A stretch of 64,000 bases of DNA from Pseudomonas aeruginosa PAO1. GTDB lineage: Bacteria; Pseudomonadota; Gammaproteobacteria; Pseudomonadales; Pseudomonadaceae. Under the pieces are notes generated by a model. That model saw only the letters and a program-made list of their open reading frames with translations. It searched no databases and had not been told where the DNA came from. The stretch lies in the NCBI RefSeq assembly GCF_000006765.1, contig NC_002516.2; one strand, given 5' to 3'. The translations under genes and the position numbers were made by a program. This document shows, one piece after another, positions 16,373 to 49,878 of this stretch (position 1 is the first letter of the stretch; every line of letters starts with the position of its first letter).

Positions 16373-17112
16373 TCAGTGGTGCCGCTTCCGGAATCGGCGC
16401 CGCCAGCGCGCGGCTGTTCCACCGCCGGGGCTGGCGGGTCGGTTTGCTGGACATCGATGCCGAGGCGTTGCGCGGCTTGGCCGCGCAACTGCCGGGCGCC
16501 TGGCACCGCGCCGTGGACGTCAGCGAGCCCGACGCGGTCGGCGAGGCGCTTGCGCAGTTCTGTGCCGATGGCCGCCTGCGCCTGCTGTTCAACTGCGCCG
16601 GCGTCCTGCGTTTCGGCCGCTTCGAAGAGGTCGCCCTGGAGGACCACGCGCGGTTGCTGGCGATCAACCTGCATGGCGTCCTCAACTGCTGTCACGCGGC
16701 CTTTCCGTTCCTGCGCGCGACGCCGCAGGCGCAGGTGCTCAACATGGGCTCGGCATCGGGGCTGTATGGCGTACCGGAGATGGCCGTCTACTCGGCCTCG
16801 AAGTTCGCCGTGCGCGGGCTTACCGAGGCGCTGGAGCTGGAATGGCGCCGCCACGGTATTCGTGTGGCCGACCTGATGCCGCCGTTCGTTCGCACGCCGA
16901 TGGTCGCCGGGCAGGCCTACCAGCCGCCGGTGTTGCGTCGCCTGGGGCTGAGACTGGACGCCGAGGATATCGCCGAGGCGGCCTGGCGGCACGCGCACAG
17001 CCGGCGGGTACACCGGCCGGTGGGCGGGTTGTTCACGGCGCTGTACTGGGCTGGGCAGTTGTCTCCGCCGTGGGTGAACCGAGCGGTGATGGCGTGGTTG
17101 TCGCGGGGTTAG
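16357..17112 (+). CDS. Short-chain dehydrogenase/reductase
   Basis: GTG start; SGAASGIG, NCAG, YSASK. Confidence 0.9.
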   Translation: MQNILISGAASGIGAASARLFHRRGWRVGLLDIDAEALRGLAAQLPGAWHRAVDVSEPDAVGEALAQFCADGRLRLLFNCAGVLRFGRFEEVALEDHARLLAINLHGVLNCCHAAFPFLRATPQAQVLNMGSASGLYGVPEMAVYSASKFAVRGLTEALELEWRRHGIRVADLMPPFVRTPMVAGQAYQPPVLRRLGLRLDAEDIAEAAWRHAHSRRVHRPVGGLFTALYWAGQLSPPWVNRAVMAWLSRG

Positions 17113-17332
17113 GCTCTGCGCAGGATGGATAGAACGGATTAAAGCTTGGGTGGGTTTCACGCTGGATGGTCTAGCTGCTTTTCGTGGCTGCCTCGACTTC
17201 TTGTTTCGCCGTCCCAGGCGAGTGAAATCCATGGTAGATCTCGGACCATAGGTATGCCTTAGCCAGGCGCCGGTGCTTATCGCTACCGTTGAGCCCAAGA
17301 GTCCTCCTCGGGTGGGACCGTTGCCTCCCGTA

Positions 17333-18766
17333 TCAAGCACGCATCGTCAGCATCTCTTGGGGGCCTTCGCGTAGGAGCGCTGCCAGGACTGCGAAGCCGT
17401 CAGATAACGTATTCCCCCCTCCTGGGGAATTGCTGACGCTGATTCGAATGGCCTGGGGAAGCGTACCGCGGCCCGTACTAAAGGCCTCTGCGGTGGTGAC
17501 AAGATGCTGCTGTCCGCGCATGCCTTGCTCTATTTCGATGGCGCGCCAGGGGGCTGGCACTTCTACCCAGAAATGCGGACAGCATAGATGGCTGCGATAG
17601 GTCAGGCCCTGCAGCAGGTCCACAACCAGCGCTTGGCGACGCGCGATTTCCCCTCTCTGGTATTCGAGCAGTGCGCTTGCAGTACCGTCCTCGACCCATC
17701 GGCTCGCAATCTCGAGAACCAGTGGTGTCGCCATCCAGCACGAATTGCGAAGCGCTGCTGCCATGCGACTTACCATGGATGCAGGAGCATGAACGTATCC
17801 AACCCGCAATCCTGCAGCGACCGCCTTGCTCATGCCACCGATGAGGATGCCCCGCTCAGGCAGCAGATGGCAGAGAGGGGTGGGGCGTTCGGCCATCAAT
17901 ACAGCATGGGTTTCGTCCTCGATGACGATCAAGCCGTGCTCGCGGCAGATCTTCGCGATTTCCTTCCGCCTGGCGCCTGACATCACTGCAGTGGTCGGGT
18001 TCTGGATGGTGGGTGTGCAGTACAGGGCGGTGATCCTGTTCGTGCGGCAGGCCTCTTCGAGGGCGTCGGGCAGTAGCCCCTCTTCATCCATTTCCAAGCC
18101 GAGCACCTTGATGCCCAACAGTTGCGCGGCACTGATCAGCCCAGGATAGGAGAGCTGCTCCGTTACCAGGGTGTCGCCGGCGCGCAGCATGGCCATAAGC
18201 ACGACGAGCAGACCGTGTTGGCTGCCATTGACGCACAGAATCTGCTGGTGCTCCGCTTGAAACTCACCGTGAGACAGCCATGTTGCTCCCGCTTGCCGGT
18301 GTCGGAGCAGTCCTGTGTCGGGTGTGTAGAGCATTAACTCCTGCAGGAGCTCAGGGGCCGCACTCAATTGCTGAAGGCTGCGGGAAAGCAGTTCGGTCTC
18401 ATTGCCCGGAATATGCATATTCCGGCTCATGTCGTTGCACATCTCGGTGCTGTCTACGAAATTGCGAAAGCCCGCCTCCCGAGCACGTTCTCGACCGCGG
18501 TTGCGGACGAACGTACCGTCGCCGACCCGAGCCTCAACCAGCCCCATGCGCTCCAGCTCACCATAGGCCCGGCTCACCGTGCCCGCGGTCACACCGAGCT
18601 TGTCCGCGAGGATGCGATGTGGCGGCAGCTTGACTCCCTGCCGGAGAACCCCATTGCGAATAGATTCTTCGATGCCCTGGGCCAGCCGTTTGTACTTCAG
18701 GCCGGGCCCTTCTGGTAGGAAGAATCTGAAAATTGAATCGGTGTCAATATTTGCTTTGACCGGCAT
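17333..18766 (-). CDS. MocR/GabR-family regulator (GntR wHTH + PLP aminotransferase-like domain)
   Basis: KLPPHRILADKLGVTAGTVSRAYGEL HTH; EQLSYPG, IEDE, SKAVAAGLRVG. Confidence 0.92.
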   Translation of the reverse strand: MPVKANIDTDSIFRFFLPEGPGLKYKRLAQGIEESIRNGVLRQGVKLPPHRILADKLGVTAGTVSRAYGELERMGLVEARVGDGTFVRNRGRERAREAGFRNFVDSTEMCNDMSRNMHIPGNETELLSRSLQQLSAAPELLQELMLYTPDTGLLRHRQAGATWLSHGEFQAEHQQILCVNGSQHGLLVVLMAMLRAGDTLVTEQLSYPGLISAAQLLGIKVLGLEMDEEGLLPDALEEACRTNRITALYCTPTIQNPTTAVMSGARRKEIAKICREHGLIVIEDETHAVLMAERPTPLCHLLPERGILIGGMSKAVAAGLRVGYVHAPASMVSRMAAALRNSCWMATPLVLEIASRWVEDGTASALLEYQRGEIARRQALVVDLLQGLTYRSHLCCPHFWVEVPAPWRAIEIEQGMRGQQHLVTTAEAFSTGRGTLPQAIRISVSNSPGGGNTLSDGFAVLAALLREGPQEMLTMRA

Positions 18767-18799
18767 ATTTTCTCCGAATTAACCTCAAATAAAGAGGTT
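18732..18799. promoter_or_regulatory. Two inverted repeats in the divergent mocR/eamA control region (candidate operators)
   Basis: ATTGA-N7-TCAAT at 18732-18748 and AACCTC-N7-GAGGTT at 18781-18799, within an AT-rich tract. Confidence 0.45.
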
Positions 18800-18847
18800 T
18801 GATAAGCAATAAAGGGCGTCAATCAAAGAATAACATGGGGGAAAGAC

Positions 18848-19789
18848 GTGCAACTTATGTCAATTCAAGCTCTGACTATCAACAGGCGGCAGGTACGTGT
18901 GGCCAGCCTGGTGACCGCTGTTCTATTTCTAGTGGTGTGTATCAGCTGGGGGACTACCTGGCTCGGCATCAAGATCGCCGTGGAGAGCGTGCCGCCGCTA
19001 ACTGCCGCCGGATTGCGCTTTCTGATCGCATTTCCGCTTTTCCTGCTCTTTGCGCGGCTGCGCCACGAGACGATCTTTTTCCCGCGGCGACTCCTGGCCT
19101 TCTTCGTCTTCGTGACGCTCGGCTACTTCAGCGTGCCCTACTACCTGCTGAACTATGGCGAGCAATACGTCGCTTCAGGTCTTACCGCGCTGCTGTTCAG
19201 CAGCATGCCCGTGTTCATCCTGATCTTCTCCGCGATCTTCCTGCGCGAGCGCATCTACCTGTCGCAGATCCTTGGTATTGCGATTGGCTTCGGCAGCCTG
19301 TTCATGATCATCAGGTCTCAAGGGCTGCATCTGGACTACACGGAGTTGTTAGGCGTACTTGCCATCCTGCTCGCGGCGATCATGCACGCACTCAGCTACG
19401 TCATCACCAAAAGGCAAGGTGCTGACATCGGCGTGATCACCTTCAATACGCTGCCCATTGGCATCGCCGGCTTGGGGCTGTTCATGGCCGGACTCGTGAT
19501 GGAACACCCGAACCTGTCTGCCGTCACAAGCCGATCTTGGGCTGCCCTGATCTATCTCGGTCTGGTGGCATCAGTCGGGGGATTCATCGTGTACTTCTTC
19601 CTGCTCAAGCGTTTGAGTCCCGTTGTGCTGTCGTTTGTCTTCATCATTTTCCCGGTGTTCGCCGTGATCATCGGCGCCTGGTACGAAGGGGTTGCCATCT
19701 CTCGCGAGTTGATTGGCTTCACCGTGCTCCTATTGGCTGGATTTGCCATCACCAAGCTTCCCATCGAGAAGCTGCTCGGCAGGAGGTGA
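18848..19789 (+). CDS. EamA/DMT-family exporter
   Basis: 10 TM segments; WGTTWLGIK, LNYGEQYVASGL, FPVFAVIIG; alternative start 18857. Confidence 0.88.
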   Translation: MQLMSIQALTINRRQVRVASLVTAVLFLVVCISWGTTWLGIKIAVESVPPLTAAGLRFLIAFPLFLLFARLRHETIFFPRRLLAFFVFVTLGYFSVPYYLLNYGEQYVASGLTALLFSSMPVFILIFSAIFLRERIYLSQILGIAIGFGSLFMIIRSQGLHLDYTELLGVLAILLAAIMHALSYVITKRQGADIGVITFNTLPIGIAGLGLFMAGLVMEHPNLSAVTSRSWAALIYLGLVASVGGFIVYFFLLKRLSPVVLSFVFIIFPVFAVIIGAWYEGVAISRELIGFTVLLLAGFAITKLPIEKLLGRR

Positions 19790-19790
19790 C

Positions 19791-20249
19791 ATGAATACGA
19801 ACGTGTTGACCGAGCATGCATTGAGCGTGATCTACAGACACGCCTGCAGGACCTATCCAAGGGAATGCTGCGGATTCGTTCTCGCCGATGCAAAAGTGAA
19901 AGAGGGTACGAACATCCAGGATGAACTGCACATGGCTGACCCCCGGAGGTACCCACGCACGGCCGCCAACGGGTACACGTTTTCCGTGACGGATACCGTA
20001 TTCCTCAACAGCAGCTTCAAGACGTGCAGCCCGGTATCCGTCATCTACCACTCCCACCCGGACGTCGGTGCCTACTTCAGCCGGGAGGATATCGACAAGG
20101 CATTGTATGCCGGGGAGCCAATGCTGCCGGTCGACTACCTGGTTGTTGATGTGGCCGCCGGCAACGTTCGCGGCGCAAAACTGTTTGCCTGGCGCAACGG
20201 ACGCTTTGAATGCACACGAGAGTTCGGGCCATCGAGCCAGGACGAGTAG
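19791..20249 (+). CDS. JAB/MPN+ (Mov34, Mec+-like) Zn metalloprotease
   Basis: YPRECCG glutamate and complete JAMM motif H-S-H-x7-S-x2-D (HSHPDVGAYFSRED); AGGAGG RBS. Confidence 0.9.
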   Translation: MNTNVLTEHALSVIYRHACRTYPRECCGFVLADAKVKEGTNIQDELHMADPRRYPRTAANGYTFSVTDTVFLNSSFKTCSPVSVIYHSHPDVGAYFSREDIDKALYAGEPMLPVDYLVVDVAAGNVRGAKLFAWRNGRFECTREFGPSSQDE

Positions 20250-20271
20250 ACATCTGGCAAGGAGCTGAAAA

Positions 20272-21690
20272 GTGAAGACGGTAATTTTTCCGGAAGTACT
20301 GGTACGGGCCGCCCAACTGGAAGGCGGGCGCCTGGAGGGAGCGGGCTTGACGGTTGGCGAGCTGCTGGCAGGCCTTGCCAGGAAGCATCCTTCATTACTC
20401 GGGCACCTGTATTACGAAAACGGTCAATTGAAAGAACACTTCCTGCTGACCCACAAAGGTTCGCTAGTCAATCTGGATGGCGAGCTTTCCGATGGAGATG
20501 AAGTCGAAGTCATGCTCGCGACATCTGGCGGTTCTGGCGTTGAAGCGTTGAGCGACGAAGAAGTTCAACGCTACGTTCGCCACATCACGTTGCCAGGCGT
20601 TGGCAGGGAAGGCCAGCAGCGCCTGAAGCAGGCCAGGGTGCTGATAATCGGAACGGGCGGCCTGGGTTCGCCCGCTTGCCTTTATCTGGCCGCAGCAGGA
20701 GTGGGCACCATCGGGCTGGTTGACTTTGACGTGGTGGAGTCGAGCAATCTCCAGCGCCAGGTCGTCCATGGCTATAGCACGCTCGGTATGCCGAAGGTTG
20801 AGTCCGCCCAGCGCCGGATGCAGGACCTGAACCCCTACATTGAAGTCGTAACCCACCGTTACGCCATCGACGCGGACAATGCGCAGTCACTGATTCAGAG
20901 CTATGACCTGGTATTGGATGGCACCGACAACTTCGCCACACGTTACTTGGTCAACGCGGTTTGCGCCAAGCTCGGAAAACCACTCGTCTTTGGCGCGATC
21001 TATCGGTTCGAAGGTCAGGTCAGCGTCTTCAATCTGGAGGGAGGCCCCTGCTACCAATGTCTCTTCCCGAACAATCCCCCGCCTGAGATGGCTCCAAGCT
21101 GTAACGCAGGGGGAGTTATTGGTGTGCTGCCTGGAGTGATTGGCCTGCTGCAGGCAACCGAGGCGGTGAAGGCCCTCGTCGGCCTGGGCAAGTCCCTATC
21201 AGGCAGACTTCTTCGATTCGACGCGCTGCTCATGCACTTCAATGAAGTGAAGTTCAATCGGCGCGACGATTGTCCGGCCTGCGGCAAAACCGCTGCAGAG
21301 AATCCCCGCCACTGGAGGGAGGGATTGCTCTGCCAGGCAAGCGCGGCACCGTCGCAACGACTCGACGACGATCGCTATATCGATCCCGGCTGCCTGTTGC
21401 AGTTGATGAAATCCAACAGCGAAAACTATGCCCTTCTGGATGTACGCGACGCGGGCGAGCTCGAAGTGTGCCAGTTGCCGGGGATCGTCCACGTTCCCTT
21501 GAACGAACTCGCCAGCCATTTCGCCAATCTCGACTTCAGTAAGCGCTACATCCTCGTGTGCTACGCCGGCACTCGTGCCGAACGCGCGGCCATACAGCTC
21601 ATGGGGGCAGGGTTCTCCAACGTCCAAGTGCTCGATGGCGGCATGAAGCGATGGGCGAAAGAGATAGAGCAGCACATGCCGATGTACTGA
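20272..21690 (+). CDS. Fusion of MoaD/ThiS/CysO-like ubiquitin-fold sulfur carrier + E1-like adenylyltransferase + rhodanese (MoeZ-like)
   Basis: N-terminal ~87 aa beta-grasp-like domain ending TSGG; GTGGLG, SNLQRQ, DGTDN, CYQC/CPAC Zn pairs, PSC; rhodanese LDVR...CYAGTRA. Confidence 0.88.
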   Translation: MKTVIFPEVLVRAAQLEGGRLEGAGLTVGELLAGLARKHPSLLGHLYYENGQLKEHFLLTHKGSLVNLDGELSDGDEVEVMLATSGGSGVEALSDEEVQRYVRHITLPGVGREGQQRLKQARVLIIGTGGLGSPACLYLAAAGVGTIGLVDFDVVESSNLQRQVVHGYSTLGMPKVESAQRRMQDLNPYIEVVTHRYAIDADNAQSLIQSYDLVLDGTDNFATRYLVNAVCAKLGKPLVFGAIYRFEGQVSVFNLEGGPCYQCLFPNNPPPEMAPSCNAGGVIGVLPGVIGLLQATEAVKALVGLGKSLSGRLLRFDALLMHFNEVKFNRRDDCPACGKTAAENPRHWREGLLCQASAAPSQRLDDDRYIDPGCLLQLMKSNSENYALLDVRDAGELEVCQLPGIVHVPLNELASHFANLDFSKRYILVCYAGTRAERAAIQLMGAGFSNVQVLDGGMKRWAKEIEQHMPMY

Positions 21691-21708
21691 ACCATAGGCA
21701 GGGAAAGC

Positions 21709-22626
21709 ATGATCTACGATTCGCTACTCGATTTAATTGGCGGGACGCCGGTGATACGGCTGAGCAAATTGTCTGCTCGCCTGGGGGTGAGCGTATTCGC
21801 CAAGCTGGAATCCTTCAATCCAGGAGGAAGTCATAAGGCGCGTATCGCGCTCTGGATGATTCTGGATGCCGAACGCAAAGGAATCCTGGTGCGCGGGAAA
21901 GGGCAGACCATTCTCGAGCCGAGCGGGGGAAATACGGGGATTGGACTGGCAATGGCGGGGAACATCCTGGGGTACCGCGTGTCCCTGGTGGTTCCCGACA
22001 ACTACAGCCCTGACAAGAGACAATTGCTCGAGCTGTATGGCGCTCACGTCGTGCTGTCGGATAGCAGAAAAGGGAACAACTCGCATGGCGAGCTGGCAAT
22101 CCAGATACTGCTGGAACATCCGGAGTTCGTCATGCTCAACCAGCAGCGCAATCCAGCCAACCCGCAAGCCCATCGCGAAGCTACAGCCCTGGAAATCCTG
22201 AGGGACTTTGCAGGCCAGCCACCCCCGGACTTCTTCTTCGCTGGCATTGGAACTGGTGGACATATCACGGGTGTTGGAGAGGTGCTGAGGAACCACTGGC
22301 CGGATATGGCCATCTATGGCGTGCAGCCAGAGCAGTGCGACTTGCTCGACGATAGGCACGCATCGCATGAGATTCAGGGACTTTCCATTGGTATCGTGCC
22401 GGAAGTCTGCAACCTCGGCATTGTTACTGGCATGGTCGGGGTGTCGAAATCTGCCTGCTTGTCGATGATCCGGGAAGTCCTGCAAAACGACTCTGTGAGC
22501 ATGGGGTTGTCCTCCGCAGCCAACCTGGTCGCGGTGCTGAACATGGCATCTGCCATGCCGTCAGGCGCTCGTGTACTGACGATGATCTACGATGGCGTCG
22601 AGTCATACATGGACGCTTTTCGATGA
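21709..22626 (+). CDS. PLP-dependent cysteine synthase family enzyme (CysM-like, divergent)
   Basis: AKLESFNPGGSHKAR PLP-Lys, GNTG, GIGTGG, RQLLELYGA. Confidence 0.88.
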   Translation: MIYDSLLDLIGGTPVIRLSKLSARLGVSVFAKLESFNPGGSHKARIALWMILDAERKGILVRGKGQTILEPSGGNTGIGLAMAGNILGYRVSLVVPDNYSPDKRQLLELYGAHVVLSDSRKGNNSHGELAIQILLEHPEFVMLNQQRNPANPQAHREATALEILRDFAGQPPPDFFFAGIGTGGHITGVGEVLRNHWPDMAIYGVQPEQCDLLDDRHASHEIQGLSIGIVPEVCNLGIVTGMVGVSKSACLSMIREVLQNDSVSMGLSSAANLVAVLNMASAMPSGARVLTMIYDGVESYMDAFR

Positions 22627-22659
22627 AGTTGTAGAGCAGAGCACGGCGATAACGCTTGC

Positions 22660-23403
22660 ATGGTCGAAATGAGGTCGCATGCGATGGACAAACTGGTAGG
22701 TAATCTGATGCGCGCGGCATTGATGGAGTGCTGCTCACCCCAACTGGTGGAGCGGATAGTCGCTCATTCGATGTTCGAAGAAGCCAGACGTTGGTGCGAG
22801 GAAGACCTGCAGGCATTCGCCAGCAAGGATCCAGCCGCACAGGGACGGACATCCGACATTGCGTTTGGCTACAGCTCGTTCAAGGCAGTGCTGCACTACC
22901 GGCTTTCCCACATGCTGTGTCTGCGAAGCACATCTGAAGGCGATCCTGAGAGAGCGTTGGAGGCTACCGCGCTCCTGGTCTCCTCTCGTGGAAAGCTCCT
23001 GTCGGGCGCGGAAATCCACCCAAGATGCAAGATTGGCAGTCGATTCATCCTGGACCATGGGCATGGCACGGTCATTGGCGAGACAGCGGTAATCGGTGAT
23101 GACTGTTACATCCTCGGAGGTGTGGTATTGGGGGCAACTGGCATATCGGCTAATCCCGCCGGTAAGCGTCACCCCACCATAGGGAGCCGCGTCCAAATCG
23201 GGGCCTTCACGCGTGTACTGGGTGACATCGCTATCGGCGACGATGTGTTTGTCGGTCCGCATTGTGTCATCAAGGACGACATCCCTGTCGGTTCAGTCGT
23301 AACCCTGCGTTCTGAACTACAGGTCATCCGAGGCCCCCACATAGTTCAGCAACTACAGCCGGCAGCCACGCAGACCCAAATTCAACCAATGGAGGCATCA
23401 TGA
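22660..23403 (+). CDS. Serine O-acetyltransferase-like hexapeptide acyltransferase
   Basis: AEIHPRCKIG, DHGHGTVIGETAVIG, KRHPTIG left-handed beta-helix motifs. Confidence 0.85.
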   Translation: MVEMRSHAMDKLVGNLMRAALMECCSPQLVERIVAHSMFEEARRWCEEDLQAFASKDPAAQGRTSDIAFGYSSFKAVLHYRLSHMLCLRSTSEGDPERALEATALLVSSRGKLLSGAEIHPRCKIGSRFILDHGHGTVIGETAVIGDDCYILGGVVLGATGISANPAGKRHPTIGSRVQIGAFTRVLGDIAIGDDVFVGPHCVIKDDIPVGSVVTLRSELQVIRGPHIVQQLQPAATQTQIQPMEAS

Positions 23404-24134
23404 CGCAGACCGCCTCCCTTTTTCTCCAGGACTCCTACCGGGAAGAGTGTTTGGCGAGAATCACCGATGTCGTTGAAGATGGCCTGCTGCTCGACCAGAC
23501 CGTTTTCTATCCCCAGGGGGGTGGCCAGGCTGGAGACAGTGGTTGGCTGACGCTGGCTGATGGCACGCGGCTCCGGATCGCCGATACACGCAAGGGGACA
23601 GAAGCAGGTGCTGGCAGGGATGCCATCCTGCATATCCCAGCTGAAGGCCAGGCAACCGTTCTCCGAGCAATGAAGCCTGGCGAGGTGGTTCTTGCGCAGA
23701 TCGATTGGGTGCGTCGTTACCGGCACATGCGACTGCATACCGCAGCGCACATGCTCTGTGCTGTCCTGCCCTATCCGGTCAATGGGTGCAGCATCACTGA
23801 TGAGCATGCGCGCCTGGACTTCGTGACGAGTGAACCGCTGTCCCGCGAGGCCATTGATAGCGCCTTGGCGGCAATGGTCGAGGCAGCACATCCGGTTTCG
23901 ATCGACACCATGAGCGACGATGCACTGCGGGCTAGGCCAGATCTGGTGCGCACCATGAGTGTCCAACCTCCGATGGGCGCCGGGCAGGTTCGGTTGGTGA
24001 GTATTAAAGACACCGACCTGCAGCCTTGCGGTGGAACCCATGTGGCGAATACCGAAGAAGTTGGGGTGGTGCGCGTTTCCAAGATGGAGAAGAAATCAGC
24101 GCGCACCCGTAGGGTGGTACTGGTACTGGGTTGA
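23400..24134 (+). CDS. AlaX (AlaXp-M) stand-alone alanyl-tRNA editing protein
   Basis: LDQTVFYPQGGGQAGD, MRLHTAAH (HxxxH) and QPCGGTH (CxxxH) Zn motifs; ATGA overlap. Confidence 0.9.
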   Translation: MTQTASLFLQDSYREECLARITDVVEDGLLLDQTVFYPQGGGQAGDSGWLTLADGTRLRIADTRKGTEAGAGRDAILHIPAEGQATVLRAMKPGEVVLAQIDWVRRYRHMRLHTAAHMLCAVLPYPVNGCSITDEHARLDFVTSEPLSREAIDSALAAMVEAAHPVSIDTMSDDALRARPDLVRTMSVQPPMGAGQVRLVSIKDTDLQPCGGTHVANTEEVGVVRVSKMEKKSARTRRVVLVLG

Positions 24135-24225
24135 GCGACTACCGTCGACATGGCCGTCGGTTTCCCATTCTACGCCACAGGTCACCCTCGCCACGCCCGG
24201 CAGCTCCATGCAATGCCAGAGGGCC

Positions 24226-24624
24226 TCAGGCCGGCAACAACGGCCGACAGGCTTCGACGAAGCGCCGGCAGGCACCCGCACATTCGCGCTCCAGCGGCTC
24301 GTCGCCATCGCAACGCTCGGCGCATGCCAGGGCATAGCGCGCCGCCAGCTCGCAGGCGGCCGGCGCCCATGGGCTGCGGCGCTCCAGCAGTAGGGCGGCG
24401 AGGCGGCAGAGGTCGGCGCAGTCGCCGGCGTGCTGGCGTTGTTCCCTGCTGGACTCGGTGCAGAGCGCCAGGTAGCGCTCGCACGCGCGGATGCAGGCCT
24501 GGGCTGCGAGCCGGCAGCGCTCTTCCGGCGCCTGGGCGGCGGCACCGCCGAGCAGGGCGTCGGCGTCGGTTTCCAGCAGGGAACCGGGGTCTTCGTTTCC
24601 GGGATCGTTGATGGCGCGGGTCAT
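24226..24624 (-). CDS. Cys-rich four-helix-bundle protein (DUF326 / Csp3-like copper storage)
   Basis: Repeated CxxxC and CxxC motifs in helical sequence; AGGAGG RBS. Confidence 0.7.
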   Translation of the reverse strand: MTRAINDPGNEDPGSLLETDADALLGGAAAQAPEERCRLAAQACIRACERYLALCTESSREQRQHAGDCADLCRLAALLLERRSPWAPAACELAARYALACAERCDGDEPLERECAGACRRFVEACRPLLPA

Positions 24625-45987: not shown

Positions 45988-46417
45988 GGGCTTTCCTCAT
46001 GAGCGTCACCCAGCTACCCCGGGTGGAATGCACGGCGAAGCCGTGCGGTTCGAGAAGGCGCGCGCAGGCCTGGGGCGCGCGGGTGGTACAGGCCAGCCCG
46101 AGTTGGTCGACATGCCCGAGGACCCGCTCGCGCAGGGTGCGGAACAGCCCGCGACCGCGCGCTTCCGCACGCAGGTAGGCATCGCGCAGGCGAACCACGT
46201 CGGGATGTTGCTCCAGGCTGACGAACCCCAGTATCCGCGTGTCCCCCTGGCGGCGGAGCACGAACCAGCGGTGGTAGGGACCGTCGCTCAGCGGGTAGCC
46301 GCCGCATTCGCGGCGCACCCGGGCGCTGGCGAAGAAGCGGCCCATGCTGGCGAAGAAGGCGGCCTCGTCGTCGAACGAGCGCCACTGCAGGATCTCGCAG
46401 TCTTGCGGGCGGATCAC
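45905..46417 (-). CDS. cgrB: GNAT-family acetyltransferase, cupA regulator B
   Basis: GTG start overlapping the cgrA stop (GTGA); YLRAEARGRGLF acetyl-CoA motif. Confidence 0.75.
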   Translation of the reverse strand: MIRPQDCEILQWRSFDDEAAFFASMGRFFASARVRRECGGYPLSDGPYHRWFVLRRQGDTRILGFVSLEQHPDVVRLRDAYLRAEARGRGLFRTLRERVLGHVDQLGLACTTRAPQACARLLEPHGFAVHSTRGSWVTLMRKAHGTDKDTDGASRGAVRRTARVAACRAD

Positions 46418-47640
46418 GAGCGCTTCTCCCGACCGGGGACCAGTCTGTCGATATCGGCCTGGGAGAAGCCGAAGGACAGCGAGCGGGCCATGTCCTGCTT
46501 CAGCAGGGATAGCGCGATACGCCGCCAGGACGGCTGCTTGCGACGATTCTCCAGGGCCGGGATCCCCGCGTCCGGCCAGATGGCAAGGGGATAGTCGTGC
46601 TGCTTCCACCAGAGGATGAAACGCTCGATGCGCCGCTGGTAGATGCCGCGCAGAGGCGGCGGCATGCTGCGCAGGAGGAACTGGCTGTACTCGCGCCAGG
46701 TGCCGAAGGAGGGCGGCAGGCCAAGGCCGCCACGGTAGCCGAGGAAGCGCTGGCGACAATAGCGCGCCCCATAGTTGGCGCCGGCGACGCGCCGGACTAC
46801 CTTGAACCAGGTGCGTGGCTCGATCCGGTGGAACAGGTCGAGGCCCTTGCGCTGGTCGTCGCCATAGGGCTGGCAGATGCGCATCTGCGAGAACGGCACG
46901 CCGGCGCGGTACATCTGGTCGTAGAGGCGGTTATAGGCGTAGCCGTGGTCGGCGACGCAACGCCAGAGATCCTCGAAACGCCAGTCGTAGATCGGGAAGA
47001 AGCTCACCGCCTGCGGGTTGGCCCGGTCGCGCGCGCTCCAGGCCAGCGGCGCGGAGCCGCCCGGCGGCGTCCAGGCGCATTGTTTCGCCCGGCTCCTGCG
47101 CTTGACCGCCAGGTAGCGATTGAGCGATTCGTCCGAACGGATGCCGACCAGGAACGCGGTAGGCTCTTCCCTGGCCAGCCAGGCGTTGAAGCCGGCGACG
47201 AACTCCTCGAACTCCATGCGGTAGCGGTAGAAGGGGAAGAACGCCGGGTCGCTGATCACCCCTCGCTGCTTCGGTAGCGGGCGCACCCAGTCGGCCTCGG
47301 CGCCGGGCTCCCAGCAGCACCAGTAGGGTTCCTCCAGGCTGGAGGCGTTGCGCAGGTTGAGTGGCAGACAGACCCACCAGGGGCGTACGTCGGGACGCCC
47401 GAGCATCTCGCTGACGTGATCGATGGTGGCCTGGTACTGCCCCTCCAGGTCGATGAACAGTACGTCCACCGGGCTGCGTCCCAACTCGCGTGCCACGTCC
47501 AGCGCCAATTGCAGGGTGACCGAGCTGTCCTTGCCACCGGAGAAGGCGACACAGACGCGCTCGAAGTTCCGGAATACCAGTCGGAGGCGGGATAGGGTTG
47601 CGGCATGCACATCGGCATCCTGGTAATGCTTGCCTGCCAT
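46414..47640 (-). CDS. cgrA: PAPS-reductase-like / DUF3440 protein (IbrA/YbdN type), cupA regulator A
   Basis: PP-loop FSGGKDS, GIRSDES, PIYDW, MRICQPYG. Confidence 0.9.
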   Translation of the reverse strand: MAGKHYQDADVHAATLSRLRLVFRNFERVCVAFSGGKDSSVTLQLALDVARELGRSPVDVLFIDLEGQYQATIDHVSEMLGRPDVRPWWVCLPLNLRNASSLEEPYWCCWEPGAEADWVRPLPKQRGVISDPAFFPFYRYRMEFEEFVAGFNAWLAREEPTAFLVGIRSDESLNRYLAVKRRSRAKQCAWTPPGGSAPLAWSARDRANPQAVSFFPIYDWRFEDLWRCVADHGYAYNRLYDQMYRAGVPFSQMRICQPYGDDQRKGLDLFHRIEPRTWFKVVRRVAGANYGARYCRQRFLGYRGGLGLPPSFGTWREYSQFLLRSMPPPLRGIYQRRIERFILWWKQHDYPLAIWPDAGIPALENRRKQPSWRRIALSLLKQDMARSLSFGFSQADIDRLVPGREKRS

Positions 47641-48492
47641 GGGTGCGAACCTCTTCTTTTAATAACTATTGAGGGAGACCGTTGCGACGACGGTCCATGT
47701 GCAATGTTTGTTTCGGAGTTTCTCCAGGCTATTTTTTCGAGAGTCGCGGCAGCCGGCACGTTCGGCGACGTTGGACTCCGAATCAGTGGATAACGGAAAT
47801 ATGTCCAGGCACTTGGCAGAGCGACGACCAACAGGCCCGACAACTGTCGTGCAGGAACTTTTTCAATGCTAGGCGAAGCCGTGGTTCGAGTTGTTGACTT
47901 GTCGCAAGACGGATTCTCCGAACAGCATCGGCGCAGCGCCCACTTGCAACGAGAGTGCGCACGCCGCCGTTGGCACTCGTCTGCGCACCGGACTTCTGAG
48001 CGGCGGCGGAAAAAGCTTGCTGCGCAAGGAGAAGCGCCTGCGGGTGAACATGGAAATTGCCCGGGAAAAGTCGACGGTAATTATTCGTTGAATAACAGGG
48101 AAGTGCATACTCCAACTTGGAAGTTAACTGCATGGCACCATCCATGCATTACACGGATGACGGTTTTTATTATAAGTCCAAACTGGCGAAGACAAGCAAG
48201 AGAGGCCGGGATGCCAGAGTTCCATAGTCGGAAATACAAGCGTTGCAATGTCGACGGATAGCACGAAGAGGCGGCGGTACCCTGCGAAACGAGGCAATTC
48301 CCCGAATGGCGGGTACTCGAACGGATTTATAAGTCCGCCGTTCGGCGTTCACCTCGACGCCTGTGCACGGGATACTTATATCGGTGGTTCGCACCACTGA
48401 TTATCGATTTGAACTCGTTCGAGTCTTTACCGCGTTCCCGGCCGAAATAAAAGGCGGGTGGACGATTATTGCCTCACACAAGGAACATAGGC
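47641..48492. promoter_or_regulatory. Long AT-richer divergent cgrA/cupA1 control region
   Basis: 852 bp with no credible CDS; imperfect Anr/FNR-like TTGAC-N4-CGCAA at 47894-47907; small inverted repeats at 48111-48121 and 48129-48148. Confidence 0.7.
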
Positions 48493-49044: not shown

Positions 49045-49131
49045 ATGCCGGCGGCGCATGCGCCGCCCCTTCCTTTTCCCAGCACTAAAGCCGGGCCCGG
49101 TCGCTGGACCGTGCCCGGCCAGGTAAGCCGC

Positions 49132-49878
49132 ATGCCCAGACATTCGTACCGATCCGGCAGGACATCGGCGCTTCTGCTCGTCCTGCTGGCGAGCATCGCC
49201 CAGGCGCGGGCAAGCGTGGTGGTGACCGGGACCCGGGTGATCTATCCCGGCGAGGCACGGGAGAAGACCGTGCAACTGAGCAATCGCGATGCGTTTCCCA
49301 ACGTCGTCCAGGCCTGGGTCGACATCGACGCCCCGGACGCGCCGCCGGACCAGGCGGACGCGCCGTTCCTGGTCAACCCGGCGGTATTCCGCATGGCCCC
49401 GGACAGCGGCCAGACGCTGCGCATCGTCTACACCGGGCAGGGCCTGCCGGGCGATCGCGAATCGCTGTTCCATCTCAACGTCCTGCAGATCCCGCCACGC
49501 AACAGCAGCCATGCGGATCGGAACCAGATGCTGCTGATGCTGCGCAATCGCCTGAAGCTGTTCTACCGCCCGGCGGGCATCCAGGGCCGTCCCGAGGACC
49601 TGCCCGGGCAACTGCGTTTCGCACTGGTCCGGCGCAGCGCCGGCTGGGCGGTGCGGGTGGACAACCCGAGCGGCTACTACGCCTCGTTCGCCAGCGCCAC
49701 GCTCAGCGTCGGCCAGCGCCGCTGGCGCTTGCGCAGCGGCATGCTGGAGCCGCGCAGCCATGCCGAATGGCAGGCCGAAACCCGAGAAGCCCTGCCGCCG
49801 GGACGCGTGCGCCTGCACGCGCTGCTGATCAACGACTACGGCGCCCATATGGATATCCGTCATGACCTATCGCCATGA
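49132..49878 (+). CDS. cupA2: Fimbrial chaperone
   Basis: GTRVIYP, VQAWVD, DRESLFHLNVLQIPP, RLKLFYRP, NPSGYY. Confidence 0.93.
   Translation: MPRHSYRSGRTSALLLVLLASIAQARASVVVTGTRVIYPGEAREKTVQLSNRDAFPNVVQAWVDIDAPDAPPDQADAPFLVNPAVFRMAPDSGQTLRIVYTGQGLPGDRESLFHLNVLQIPPRNSSHADRNQMLLMLRNRLKLFYRPAGIQGRPEDLPGQLRFALVRRSAGWAVRVDNPSGYYASFASATLSVGQRRWRLRSGMLEPRSHAEWQAETREALPPGRVRLHALLINDYGAHMDIRHDLSP

Follow-up and report, generated by a model that had tools for sequence, protein, structure and literature searches.

Seven genes at positions 17333-24134 of a 64,000-nt stretch of Pseudomonas aeruginosa PAO1 (contig NC_002516.2, assembly GCF_000006765.1; the whole stretch is referred to here as the window) may well constitute a self-contained, horizontally acquired module in which L-cysteine is built on a sulfur-carrier protein and which is under the control of its own MocR regulator, dependent on pyridoxal 5'-phosphate (PLP). 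I put the probability of this reading at roughly 55%. By gene order and annotation, the genes are PA2100 (mdrR2) to PA2106. The assignment of locus tags leans also on the PAO1 map. The order and annotations agree with published tables (PMC9431628, PMC9866376), and the last protein of the set matches "alanyl-tRNA editing protein [Pseudomonas aeruginosa]" with 100% identity.

The proposed route builds on four kinds of observation, namely the gene content, the catalytic motifs, their conservation, and the acquisition of the genes, while the chemical steps, all of them, and the parts assigned to EamA, AlaX, and MocR are drawn by analogy from characterised relatives. The enzyme resembling serine acetyltransferase (SAT) would convert L-serine to O-acetylserine. 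The JAB protease would cut PA2103 after Gly87, freeing an 87-residue ubiquitin-like carrier with a Gly-Gly C-terminus, which the E1 domain would adenylate and a persulfide on Cys430 of the rhodanese domain would convert to a thiocarboxylate. The CysK-like PLP enzyme would combine the aminoacrylate formed from O-acetylserine with the carrier thiocarboxylate, an S-to-N acyl shift would leave a C-terminal cysteine on the carrier, and hydrolysis by JAB would yield L-cysteine and the regenerated carrier. Surplus O-acetylserine or cysteine would leave the cell through EamA, AlaX would protect translation while the pools of serine or of pathway amino acids are abnormal, and the signal read by MocR would be an amino compound of the pathway. 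The three accessory genes are thus best read as overflow control of a dedicated flux from serine through O-acetylserine to cysteine, a flux that is probably unregulated.

An earlier interpretation made from the letters of the DNA (the sequence-only reading) had described the gene content, a tight operon, and a divergent MocR gene, and all three descriptions hold. The seven genes are in place with strong domain matches (Table 1). Gaps between the plus-strand genes are 1, 22, 18, and 33 nt, and the last junction is a 4-nt overlap (ATGA) of the SAT stop codon with the AlaX start codon. AGGAGG stands upstream of the JAB start codon. The regulator gene lies on the minus strand, 81 bp from that of EamA. 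Some starts call for comment: that of the JAB gene is ATG 19791, outside the EamA gene, which corrects earlier coordinates; EamA starts at GTG 18848 or at ATG 18857 (MSIQ..., the start seen in orthologues); and SAT starts at 22660 or 22684, public gene calls giving 239 or 231 amino acids.

Table 1 Features of the seven-gene block and of the island that carries it. Positions are those of the window. Numbers after domain names are E-values, unless given in bits.
Feature	Position	Strand	Evidence
Acquired island, 7115 bp	17108..24222	.	empty-site alignment, GC
MocR/GabR-type regulator PA2100 (mdrR2)	17333..18766	-	Pfam GntR 1.8e-15, Aminotran_1_2 3e-25
Putative divergent promoter/operator region	18767..18847	.	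81 bp
EamA/DMT transporter PA2101	18848..19789	+	Pfam EamA 1.6e-42, two repeats
JAB/JAMM metalloprotease PA2102	19791..20249	+	Prok-JAB 5.5e-19
Carrier/E1 fusion PA2103, 472 residues	20272..21690	+	ThiS 1e-5, ThiF 5.8e-84, Rhodanese 1.2e-14
Ubiquitin-like sulfur-carrier domain, PA2103 residues 1-87, end ...ATSGG	20272..20532	+	ThiS 26.5 bits vs 22.5 cut-off
Linker, E1-like adenylyltransferase (~101-335), and rhodanese (~382-463) of PA2103	20533..21690	+	ThiF, Rhodanese
CysK-like PLP enzyme PA2104	21709..22626	+	PALP 2.2e-71; TIGR01136 cysKM 271 bits
SAT-like hexapeptide enzyme PA2105	22660..23403	+	Hexapep 2.3e-16; TIGR01172 cysE 141 bits
AlaX-type tRNA editing (deacylase) protein PA2106	23400..24134	+	tRNA_SAD 1.4e-12; AlaXM 186 bits

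Further instances were sought through an alignment of PA2103 homologues from species-representative genomes and through the contexts of AlaX, SAT, and E1 homologues. All seven genes occur within 6.1-6.5 kb in 25 loci, spread over alpha-, beta-, and gammaproteobacteria: Bordetella genomosp. 1, Burkholderia cepacia, Paraburkholderia ribeironis, Paraburkholderia sediminicola, Pseudomonas chlororaphis, Pseudomonas indica, about 15 species of the P. fluorescens group, Allohahella marinimesophila, a Rhodopseudomonas metagenome-assembled genome (MAG), and one metagenome contig. Gene order and orientation are constant, the sole exception being P. sediminicola (locus L005), where the SAT-AlaX pair is inverted. 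The set is conserved as a unit in content and order, a point on which the sequence-only reading had made itself depend, and since the genes flanking it vary wherever they have been called, the cassette evidently moves as a unit. EamA is the protein that stays closest to its PAO1 counterpart (64-88% identity), while SAT and AlaX, both encoded at the 3' end, have the lowest identities. The catalytic motifs that were checked, described protein by protein below, are retained in all 23 sequences compared. No tailoring enzyme is encoded in any of the 25 loci, and therefore the encoded chemistry ends at L-cysteine.

Outside the Proteobacteria, a CysK-like gene recurs across phyla beside genes for a carrier and an E1-rhodanese protein, and in some Chloroflexota a SAT gene lies between them. 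In a Blastocatellia MAG (L025:7677-12414), the core of CysK-like, (JAB), and carrier-E1-rhodanese genes is flanked by genes for a 1-Cys peroxiredoxin and a 2-oxoglutarate-Fe(II) oxygenase, flanks that hint at a link to oxidative stress.

The carrier domain of PA2103 is homologous to the GG-terminated proteins SAMP1 and MoaD. It aligns end to end with SAMP1 (chain 3po0), an SGG terminus being common to both, and it shares 32% identity (E 2e-10) with a free-standing 95-amino-acid ThiS-family protein ending in ITGG from a Chloroflexota genome, the gene of which lies directly upstream of an E1-rhodanese gene, with one in-frame stop between the two, and beside CysK-like and SAT genes. In a Chloroflexota MAG (L033:9926-11410), the free carrier gene (...ITGG-stop) is in frame with an E1-rhodanese gene that starts 19 nt later, and loss of one stop codon there would create a fusion such as that found in Pseudomonas. 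The AlphaFold2 model of PA2103 has a beta-grasp fold at residues 1-83 (block-mean predicted local distance difference test scores of 75-92) and disorder at 84-103, and it is within the disordered stretch that the invariant G86-G87 falls. The protein thus has the beta-grasp carrier and the Gly-Gly expected of one, with the caveat that the Gly-Gly is internal and must be exposed by cleavage: a thiocarboxylate needs a free C-terminus, and therefore a cut after Gly87 is required.

For this release, the co-conserved JAB protein is the obvious protease. It is a JAMM metalloprotease by its E...HxHx7Sx2D signature, with E26(CCGF), H88-S-H90-P-D, and S98-x-x-D101 all kept. Species of the P. fluorescens group encode it as the N-terminal part of a single chain of 619-620 amino acids that continues into the carrier, E1, and rhodanese (L004:9551-11410 and 14 other loci). 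The reading frame of this long fusion is broken in L023 and L041, through either a pseudogene or an assembly error. The remainder of PA2103 is an E1-like adenylyltransferase with a C-terminal rhodanese: GTGGLGS, C260xxC263, C277, C334xxC337, and the active-site cysteine C430 of the rhodanese are conserved, C430 without exception. The score against the MoeZ equivalog is 395 bits, with a cut-off of 647. The notion in the sequence-only reading of a carrier thiocarboxylate, with a carrier processed by JAB, fits. A fused carrier also has a precedent in MoaX of Mycobacterium tuberculosis (MoaD-MoaE), in which a carrier is joined to its partner enzyme and activity requires cleavage of the MoaD part after Gly-Gly (PMC4326299). 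MoaX differs from the island protein in its partner (MoaE) and in its pathway, and the island protein has a JAB protease encoded next door or as part of the fusion.

The same parts might be thought to serve protein tagging of the SAMP/TtuB type, in which E1 would conjugate the freed carrier to targets and JAB would remove it, regulating the neighbouring enzymes. The carrier does resemble SAMP1, E1 matches the model of the SAMP-activating UbaA with 324 bits, and JAB weakly matches the desampylase model. I find this very improbable, however, for all three model scores are under their cut-offs (324 vs 450, 22 vs 130, and 27 vs 60), an E2-like gene is absent, and a rhodanese with an invariant cysteine, together with the constant linkage to CysK-like and SAT genes, points to sulfur transfer. 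It is hardly credible that E1 is simply MoeB, as annotated, serving molybdopterin or thiamine synthesis amid unrelated neighbours. Its best NCBIfam matches are indeed MoeB models (430 and 402 bits), but these scores lie under the cut-offs of the full-length MoeB/MoeZ equivalogs (449 and 633), and only a short MoeB "subfamily" model is exceeded (316 vs 266). Moreover, genes for MoaE, a MoaD partner, and ThiG/ThiH are absent from the island and from every annotated cassette, the seven-gene unit moves as a block, and this class of operon was already set apart from the cofactor pathways by Iyer et al. (PMC1779556).

The case that the sulfur goes to O-acetylserine comes from the next two proteins. 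PA2104 retains K43 and the motifs PSGGNTG, QQRNxANP, GIGTGGH(I/V)TG, and G(I/L/M)SSAAN, and so has the PLP lysine, Asn-loop, GTGG loop, and SS(G/A)A of the O-acetylserine sulfhydrylases. Set beside the canonical CysK motifs, its clade has SGGNTG for TSGNTG and GTGGH for GTGGT. The curated NCBIfam scores are not reached: 271 bits for cysKM (cut-off 344), 258 for cysK (351), and 201 for cysM (394). Among solved structures, CysK enzymes and DcsD come closest, with E-values of 8e-63 to 1e-56, while chains of M. tuberculosis CysM follow at 5e-48 to 2e-47, weaker than many CysK enzymes and DcsD. PA2104 is therefore not specifically related to M. tuberculosis CysM and has the look of a CysK-type enzyme drawn separately into a carrier relay. 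O-acetylserine is preferred to O-phosphoserine as substrate because the operon encodes a SAT.

That SAT, PA2105, aligns to solved enzymes of its kind and conserves DPA, (E/D)IH (the residue before IHP being Glu in most), (L/I)DH, and RHP. Judged by the roles of the corresponding residues in the enzymes of Escherichia coli and Haemophilus influenzae, the serine-binding and catalytic residues of CysE are all present (the Asp of DPA, the Asp-His of LDH, and the Arg-His of RHP). It falls short of canonical CysE in two respects: its score is under the cut-off of 210.65 bits for the cysE model, and, being a short form with the C-terminus ...QPMEAS, it does not have the C-terminal Ile tail. In CysE, that tail docks into CysK (PMC12895370), so a SAT without it may be free of the usual control. 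Most cassettes other than those of P. aeruginosa, Bordetella, and Burkholderiaceae encode a longer SAT, of about 330 amino acids, with some 95 extra C-terminal residues (L004:13071-13370, and also L006-L017, L019, L023, L041, L088, and L089), and 16 of the 17 long forms examined have a tail that terminates in -(I/V)GG. The extension was considered as a second sulfur carrier and rejected, since it has no Pfam match and Foldseek gave no beta-grasp. An AlphaFold2 model has a seven-strand beta domain (beta-sandwich), a helix, and a disordered tail, and the Foldseek matches are weak and immunoglobulin-like. That the long tail docks into the active site of the CysK-like enzyme in the manner of the CysE tail is a guess.

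The accessory genes are harder to accommodate, AlaX most of all. All 25 cassettes have it, and its gene follows that of SAT directly, even where the pair is inverted. PA2106 consists of tRNA_SAD plus the C-terminal part of tRNA-synt_2c, and its score against the archaeal AlaXM equivalog is under the cut-off of 300 bits. GGGQ, HTxxH, and CGGTH are kept throughout, so that PA2106 has the GGQ motif and the zinc-binding HxxxH (HTAAH) and CxxxH (CGGTH) of AlaX. I examined the descent of these proteins in a tree with broad sampling from a library of representatives, where they fall into three types, each with the motifs just named. Type A (PA2106 and the proteins of Bordetella, B. cepacia, P. ribeironis, and P. 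chlororaphis) stands beside the housekeeping AlaX genes of Burkholderiaceae, to which it is 60-75% identical (60-63% for PA2106 and the syntenic proteins of Pandoraea and Burkholderia). The context of those housekeeping genes is itself conserved, as globin-AlaX-DUF924 (Pandoraea, B. stagnalis). Type B (P. fluorescens group, P. indica, Allohahella, Rhodopseudomonas, and L089) lies elsewhere in the tree, and type C (P. sediminicola, L005) forms a third clade, set off by branches with 99% support. Constraining types A and B to one origin lowers the log-likelihood by 78 units, and the approximately unbiased test gives it a p-value of 0.026, for a grouping picked after seeing the tree. An earlier tree, confined to close homologues, had put all the cassette AlaX in one clade, a result overturned by the broader sampling; both trees were built with a quick method.

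Cassette AlaX proteins thus appear to represent two or three separate lineages, recruited more than once, and different AlaX genes seem to have come to fill the position anew. That an AlaX gene from one lineage or another always stands next to that of SAT means that it is functionally tied to the operon, and refilling by different genes, all with editing motifs, argues that the operon needs AlaX-type deacylation of the ordinary kind, whichever the aminoacyl-tRNA. The nesting of type A among housekeeping genes likewise argues for ordinary AlaX chemistry over a new specificity. The EamA protein, PA2101, is far under the cut-offs of the named YedA, EamA, and YddG families (45 bits against the EamA exporter model, with a cut-off of 472), and no named subfamily matched. 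The family includes exporters of O-acetylserine and of cysteine.

In a different account, the product that the cassette makes and sends out is a non-proteinogenic amino acid, an antimetabolite or signal, while AlaX clears tRNA mischarged with the product or with an intermediate of the O-acetylserine type. The sequence-only reading had put forward such a secreted thio-amino acid as one option. A regulator, a transporter, a tRNA deacylase, and a few enzymes make up the validated layout of clusters marked by AlaX in Millar et al. (2026; PMC13149037), where clustered AlaX proteins other than those considered here protect producers from their own non-canonical amino acids, BesG (beta-ethynylserine) and AlfB (hydroxymethionine) being the precedents. 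In the cassette, AlaX is strictly conserved and translationally coupled to SAT, EamA is the most conserved gene, types B and C of AlaX sit on long branches, and P. aeruginosa already has cysK, cysM, and cysE (PMC12800425, PMC13256707), so housekeeping cysteine does not depend on the island. The chemistry nonetheless speaks against it: no gene of the cassette backs such a product, tailoring enzymes are absent from the 25 loci, and the active-site motifs of SAT and of the CysK-like enzyme are canonical for serine and O-acetylserine. Type A of AlaX, PA2106 included, belongs with housekeeping proteins, and the same survey places AlaX from cysteine contexts in a large cluster with most of the characterised AlaX, as primary metabolism. 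I regard the exported antimetabolite as unlikely, a minority reading. The protective role of AlaX claimed in the sequence-only reading gains from the BesG and AlfB precedents and loses from the housekeeping kinship of type A. It is likewise improbable that AlaX is a deacylase dedicated to the pathway, like BesG or AlfB, acting on tRNA mischarged with excess O-acetylserine from the operon or with an exported cysteine-family compound, the product of PA2101-PA2106 being secreted.

AlaX and SAT suggest another possibility, that the purpose of the cassette is overflow of serine: SAT and the carrier would drain serine, EamA would export O-acetylserine or cysteine, AlaX would remove Ser-tRNA(Ala), and MocR would sense serine or O-acetylserine. 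SAT and AlaX both recognise a seryl moiety and stay together even when inverted, the canonical substrate of AlaX is Ser-tRNA(Ala) (PMC11260482, PMC13149037), generic AlaX lineages seem interchangeable in the cassette, and the nearest named relative of its MocR is a regulator of ectoine utilisation, EhuR. A drain for serine has no need, however, of an elaborate carrier/E1/JAB relay. I think it quite unlikely as a separate account, one that largely overlaps the L-cysteine module and differs from it only in which flux is called the purpose.

PA2100, the proposed regulator of the cassette, is of the MocR/GabR type, with an N-terminal GntR winged helix-turn-helix fused to a fold-type-I aminotransferase-like PLP domain, whose PLP lysine is kept in (S/M)(L/M)SK. 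With 452 bits against a cut-off of 480 for EhuR, its closest named family, it is not a member of that family. The putative promoter/operator region between it and the EamA gene gave no match in a simple sigma-70 scan, and promoter and terminator scans gave no signal beyond shuffled expectation. The orthologous divergent regions of type-A cassettes have in common AATTAACCT and GTCAAT-like words. As for expression, overproduction of RpoH raises PA2101-2104 and PA2106 by 2.2- to 4.3-fold (PMC9866376), and PA2100-2103 go up with N-acetylcysteine, in a study in which that compound worked chiefly by chelating zinc (PMC9431628). No experimental test of PA2101-PA2106 turned up in the literature, where PA2105 and PA2104 appear only as unstudied paralogues (PMC13256707, PMC12800425), and nothing joining thiocarboxylate, JAMM, O-acetylserine, and EamA.

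Several considerations weigh against the L-cysteine module. Plain cysteine synthesis has no obvious need for AlaX, the known editor of cysteine mischarging being YbaK, and the overflow account of EamA and AlaX is a rationalisation. All the NCBIfam equivalog scores are under their cut-offs, and so none of the enzymes is orthologous to a characterised one. PA2104 in particular is no closer to M. tuberculosis CysM than to CysK, so that its use of a protein thiocarboxylate is argued from gene context alone. Finally, a cysK cysM double mutant of PAO1 is a near-auxotroph on sulfate, with minimal and delayed growth in the absence of cysteine (PMC12800425, PMC12895370). The residual growth has been ascribed to additional cysteine synthases of low activity (PA2104 and PA1061 are named in one of the papers) or to reverse transsulfuration (same sources). 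The island thus affords the mutant no useful rescue on sulfate minimal medium (PMC12895370), and either it is silent there or it is not a source of bulk cysteine. It follows that the island is no housekeeping source of cysteine under standard conditions; it may be a conditional one.

The acquisition of the cassette can be described precisely, at least in P. aeruginosa. Genomes with and without it were retrieved by means of a neighbouring thiamine pyrophosphate enzyme, a protein present on many P. aeruginosa chromosomes. The island is carried by strains L090 (100% identical) and L093 (99.8% identical), and four others, judged by gene content, are free of it (L091, L092, L094, and L095). The alignment of the empty site of L092 with the window ends at 17107 and restarts at 24223, and hence the limits of the island are 17108-24222. 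In its place, L092 and L094 have a spacer of 409 bp, resembling a repetitive extragenic palindromic (REP) element, between convergent SDR and Csp genes. The spacer of L092 (L092:9020-9428) has the REP-like palindrome 'TTATCCGCC...GGCGGATAAC' in two copies. The GC content of the island is 58.1%, compared with 69.3% in the remaining window, and the profile across the region drops from about 69-70% to 57-59%. The island is thus a horizontally acquired segment with a presence/absence polymorphism within the species, and its description in the sequence-only reading as foreign DNA was correct.

At the borders there is no tRNA gene, no meaningful direct or inverted flanking repeat, and no integrase, transposase, or other mobility gene, and a search of Rfam gave nothing in the island at E up to 0.1 and nothing in the whole window at gathering scores. 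Nothing was found in the literature tying PA2099/PA2107 to genomic plasticity. I considered taking the "ND" entered for strain PA14 in the N-acetylcysteine study as absence of the genes and rejected this, since ND stands for "not determined" (PMC9431628). The gene to the right of the island (24226-24624, minus strand) encodes a cysteine-rich Csp/DUF326 protein of 132 amino acids, of the copper-storage four-helix-bundle family; it is host DNA, there with or without the island.

Among known systems, the nearest is the cysteine pathway of M. tuberculosis, CysO/CysM/Mec/MoeZ, which is well established. (O'Leary et al., 2008, is cited for it in PMC12895370.) The mycobacterial set (with Mec+) and the island share a Gly-Gly ubiquitin-like carrier, an E1 with a C-terminal rhodanese, a JAMM protease, and a PLP enzyme of the CysK/CysM family for beta-replacement, and in both L-cysteine would be released from a carrier-Cys adduct. 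The island differs in that its carrier forms the N-terminal part of the E1 protein (joined in some species by JAB) and must be cut free, in its SAT, which implies O-acetylserine instead of O-phosphoserine, in its PLP enzyme, which is no closer to CysM than to CysK, and in having EamA, AlaX, and MocR as fixed members of a horizontally mobile cassette with proteobacterial hosts.

Carrier thiocarboxylates are also the sulfur nucleophile of the PLP enzyme in two routes to homocysteine (HcyS/HcyD/HcyF/MetY of Wolinella and MetO/MetM/Mec/MoeZ of Streptomyces; PMC13759103), where, as proposed here, a JAMM protein processes the carrier precursor and releases the product. In contrast to the island, those routes lead from O-acetyl- or O-phospho-homoserine to homocysteine, by way of MetY or threonine-synthase-like enzymes. 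The pathways of Pseudomonas for thioquinolobactin (Qbs) and pyridine-2,6-dithiocarboxylic acid (PDTC; Pdt) have an E1-rhodanese, a small carrier, and a carrier-trimming JAB (PMC1779556), but they need an AMP-ligase for a small-molecule carboxylate, and the island has none, encoding instead the CysK/SAT pair. With CysE and CysK of E. coli and its EamA (YdeD) exporter of O-acetylserine and cysteine, the island shares the SAT catalytic residues, the fold of O-acetylserine sulfhydrylase, and a transporter of the drug/metabolite transporter (DMT) family, and it differs in the missing Ile tail and in equivalog scores under the cut-off for both enzymes and the transporter.

The sequence-only reading called the system undescribed, which is too strong, since its genes are annotated in PAO1 (PMC9431628, PMC9866376) and parts of it have been seen before. 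The catalogue of Iyer, Burroughs, and Aravind (2006) lists as "type 4c" (Table 1, row 4c) an uncharacterised operon of "Paer" and of other phyla, consisting of a ThiS/MoaD-like carrier, E1-rhodanese, JAB, and cysteine synthase (PMC1779556). I take the "Paer" entry to be this locus. The catalogue makes no mention of acetyltransferases or of alanyl-tRNA-related genes, and it includes no functional test. Millar et al. (PMC13149037) report 1,562 AlaX proteins (11% of the main AlaX cluster) co-located with genes of cysteine biosynthesis, with a co-occurrence above 90%, and call the association intriguing. It is very probably that of the present cassette. The survey counts the group as primary metabolism, and its main text reports no experiment on the group and does not mention the carrier/E1/JAB relay or the exporter.

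Work on mycobacteria, then, has already supplied the enzymology of the core. The new elements, within what I could find, are these: a strictly conserved cassette of seven genes, with a fused and probably self-processing carrier, in a proposed O-acetylserine form of the route; a SAT-AlaX module with repeated recruitment of AlaX; and the polymorphism of the island in P. aeruginosa, with its exact borders and with mdrR2 as the regulator belonging to the cassette.

Two regions of the window distant from the island have unusual composition. Between 7000 and 11000, the AT skew is strongly negative, reaching -0.335 in 2-kb windows. A non-coding stretch of about 0.8 kb (47640-48465), with GC as low as 53%, lies between a PAPS-reductase-like/DUF3440 gene (46414-47640, minus strand) and another gene, which is followed by a PapD-type fimbrial chaperone (49045-49878) and an open reading frame of 872 amino acids. 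This stretch is presumably the cupA fimbrial promoter region.

PAO1 is among the best-studied bacteria, yet the function of its PA2101-PA2106 cassette is a matter of prediction from sequence. The regulator mdrR2, known only for its effects on efflux pumps and biofilm, proves to belong to an accessory seven-gene unit that some P. aeruginosa lack. Why a cysteine-type pathway should need an editor of alanyl-tRNA is a puzzle of translational fidelity that is directly testable, and if AlaX should be a deacylase dedicated to the pathway, then a cassette widely distributed in proteobacteria would tie export and the protection of its host's own translation to a ubiquitin-like sulfur relay. If the L-cysteine module is real, the carrier-protein route known from mycobacteria would have a proteobacterial version, one that uses O-acetylserine and a fused, self-processing carrier, and P. 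aeruginosa would gain a third source of cysteine, independent of sulfide, which bears on attempts to target cysteine synthesis.

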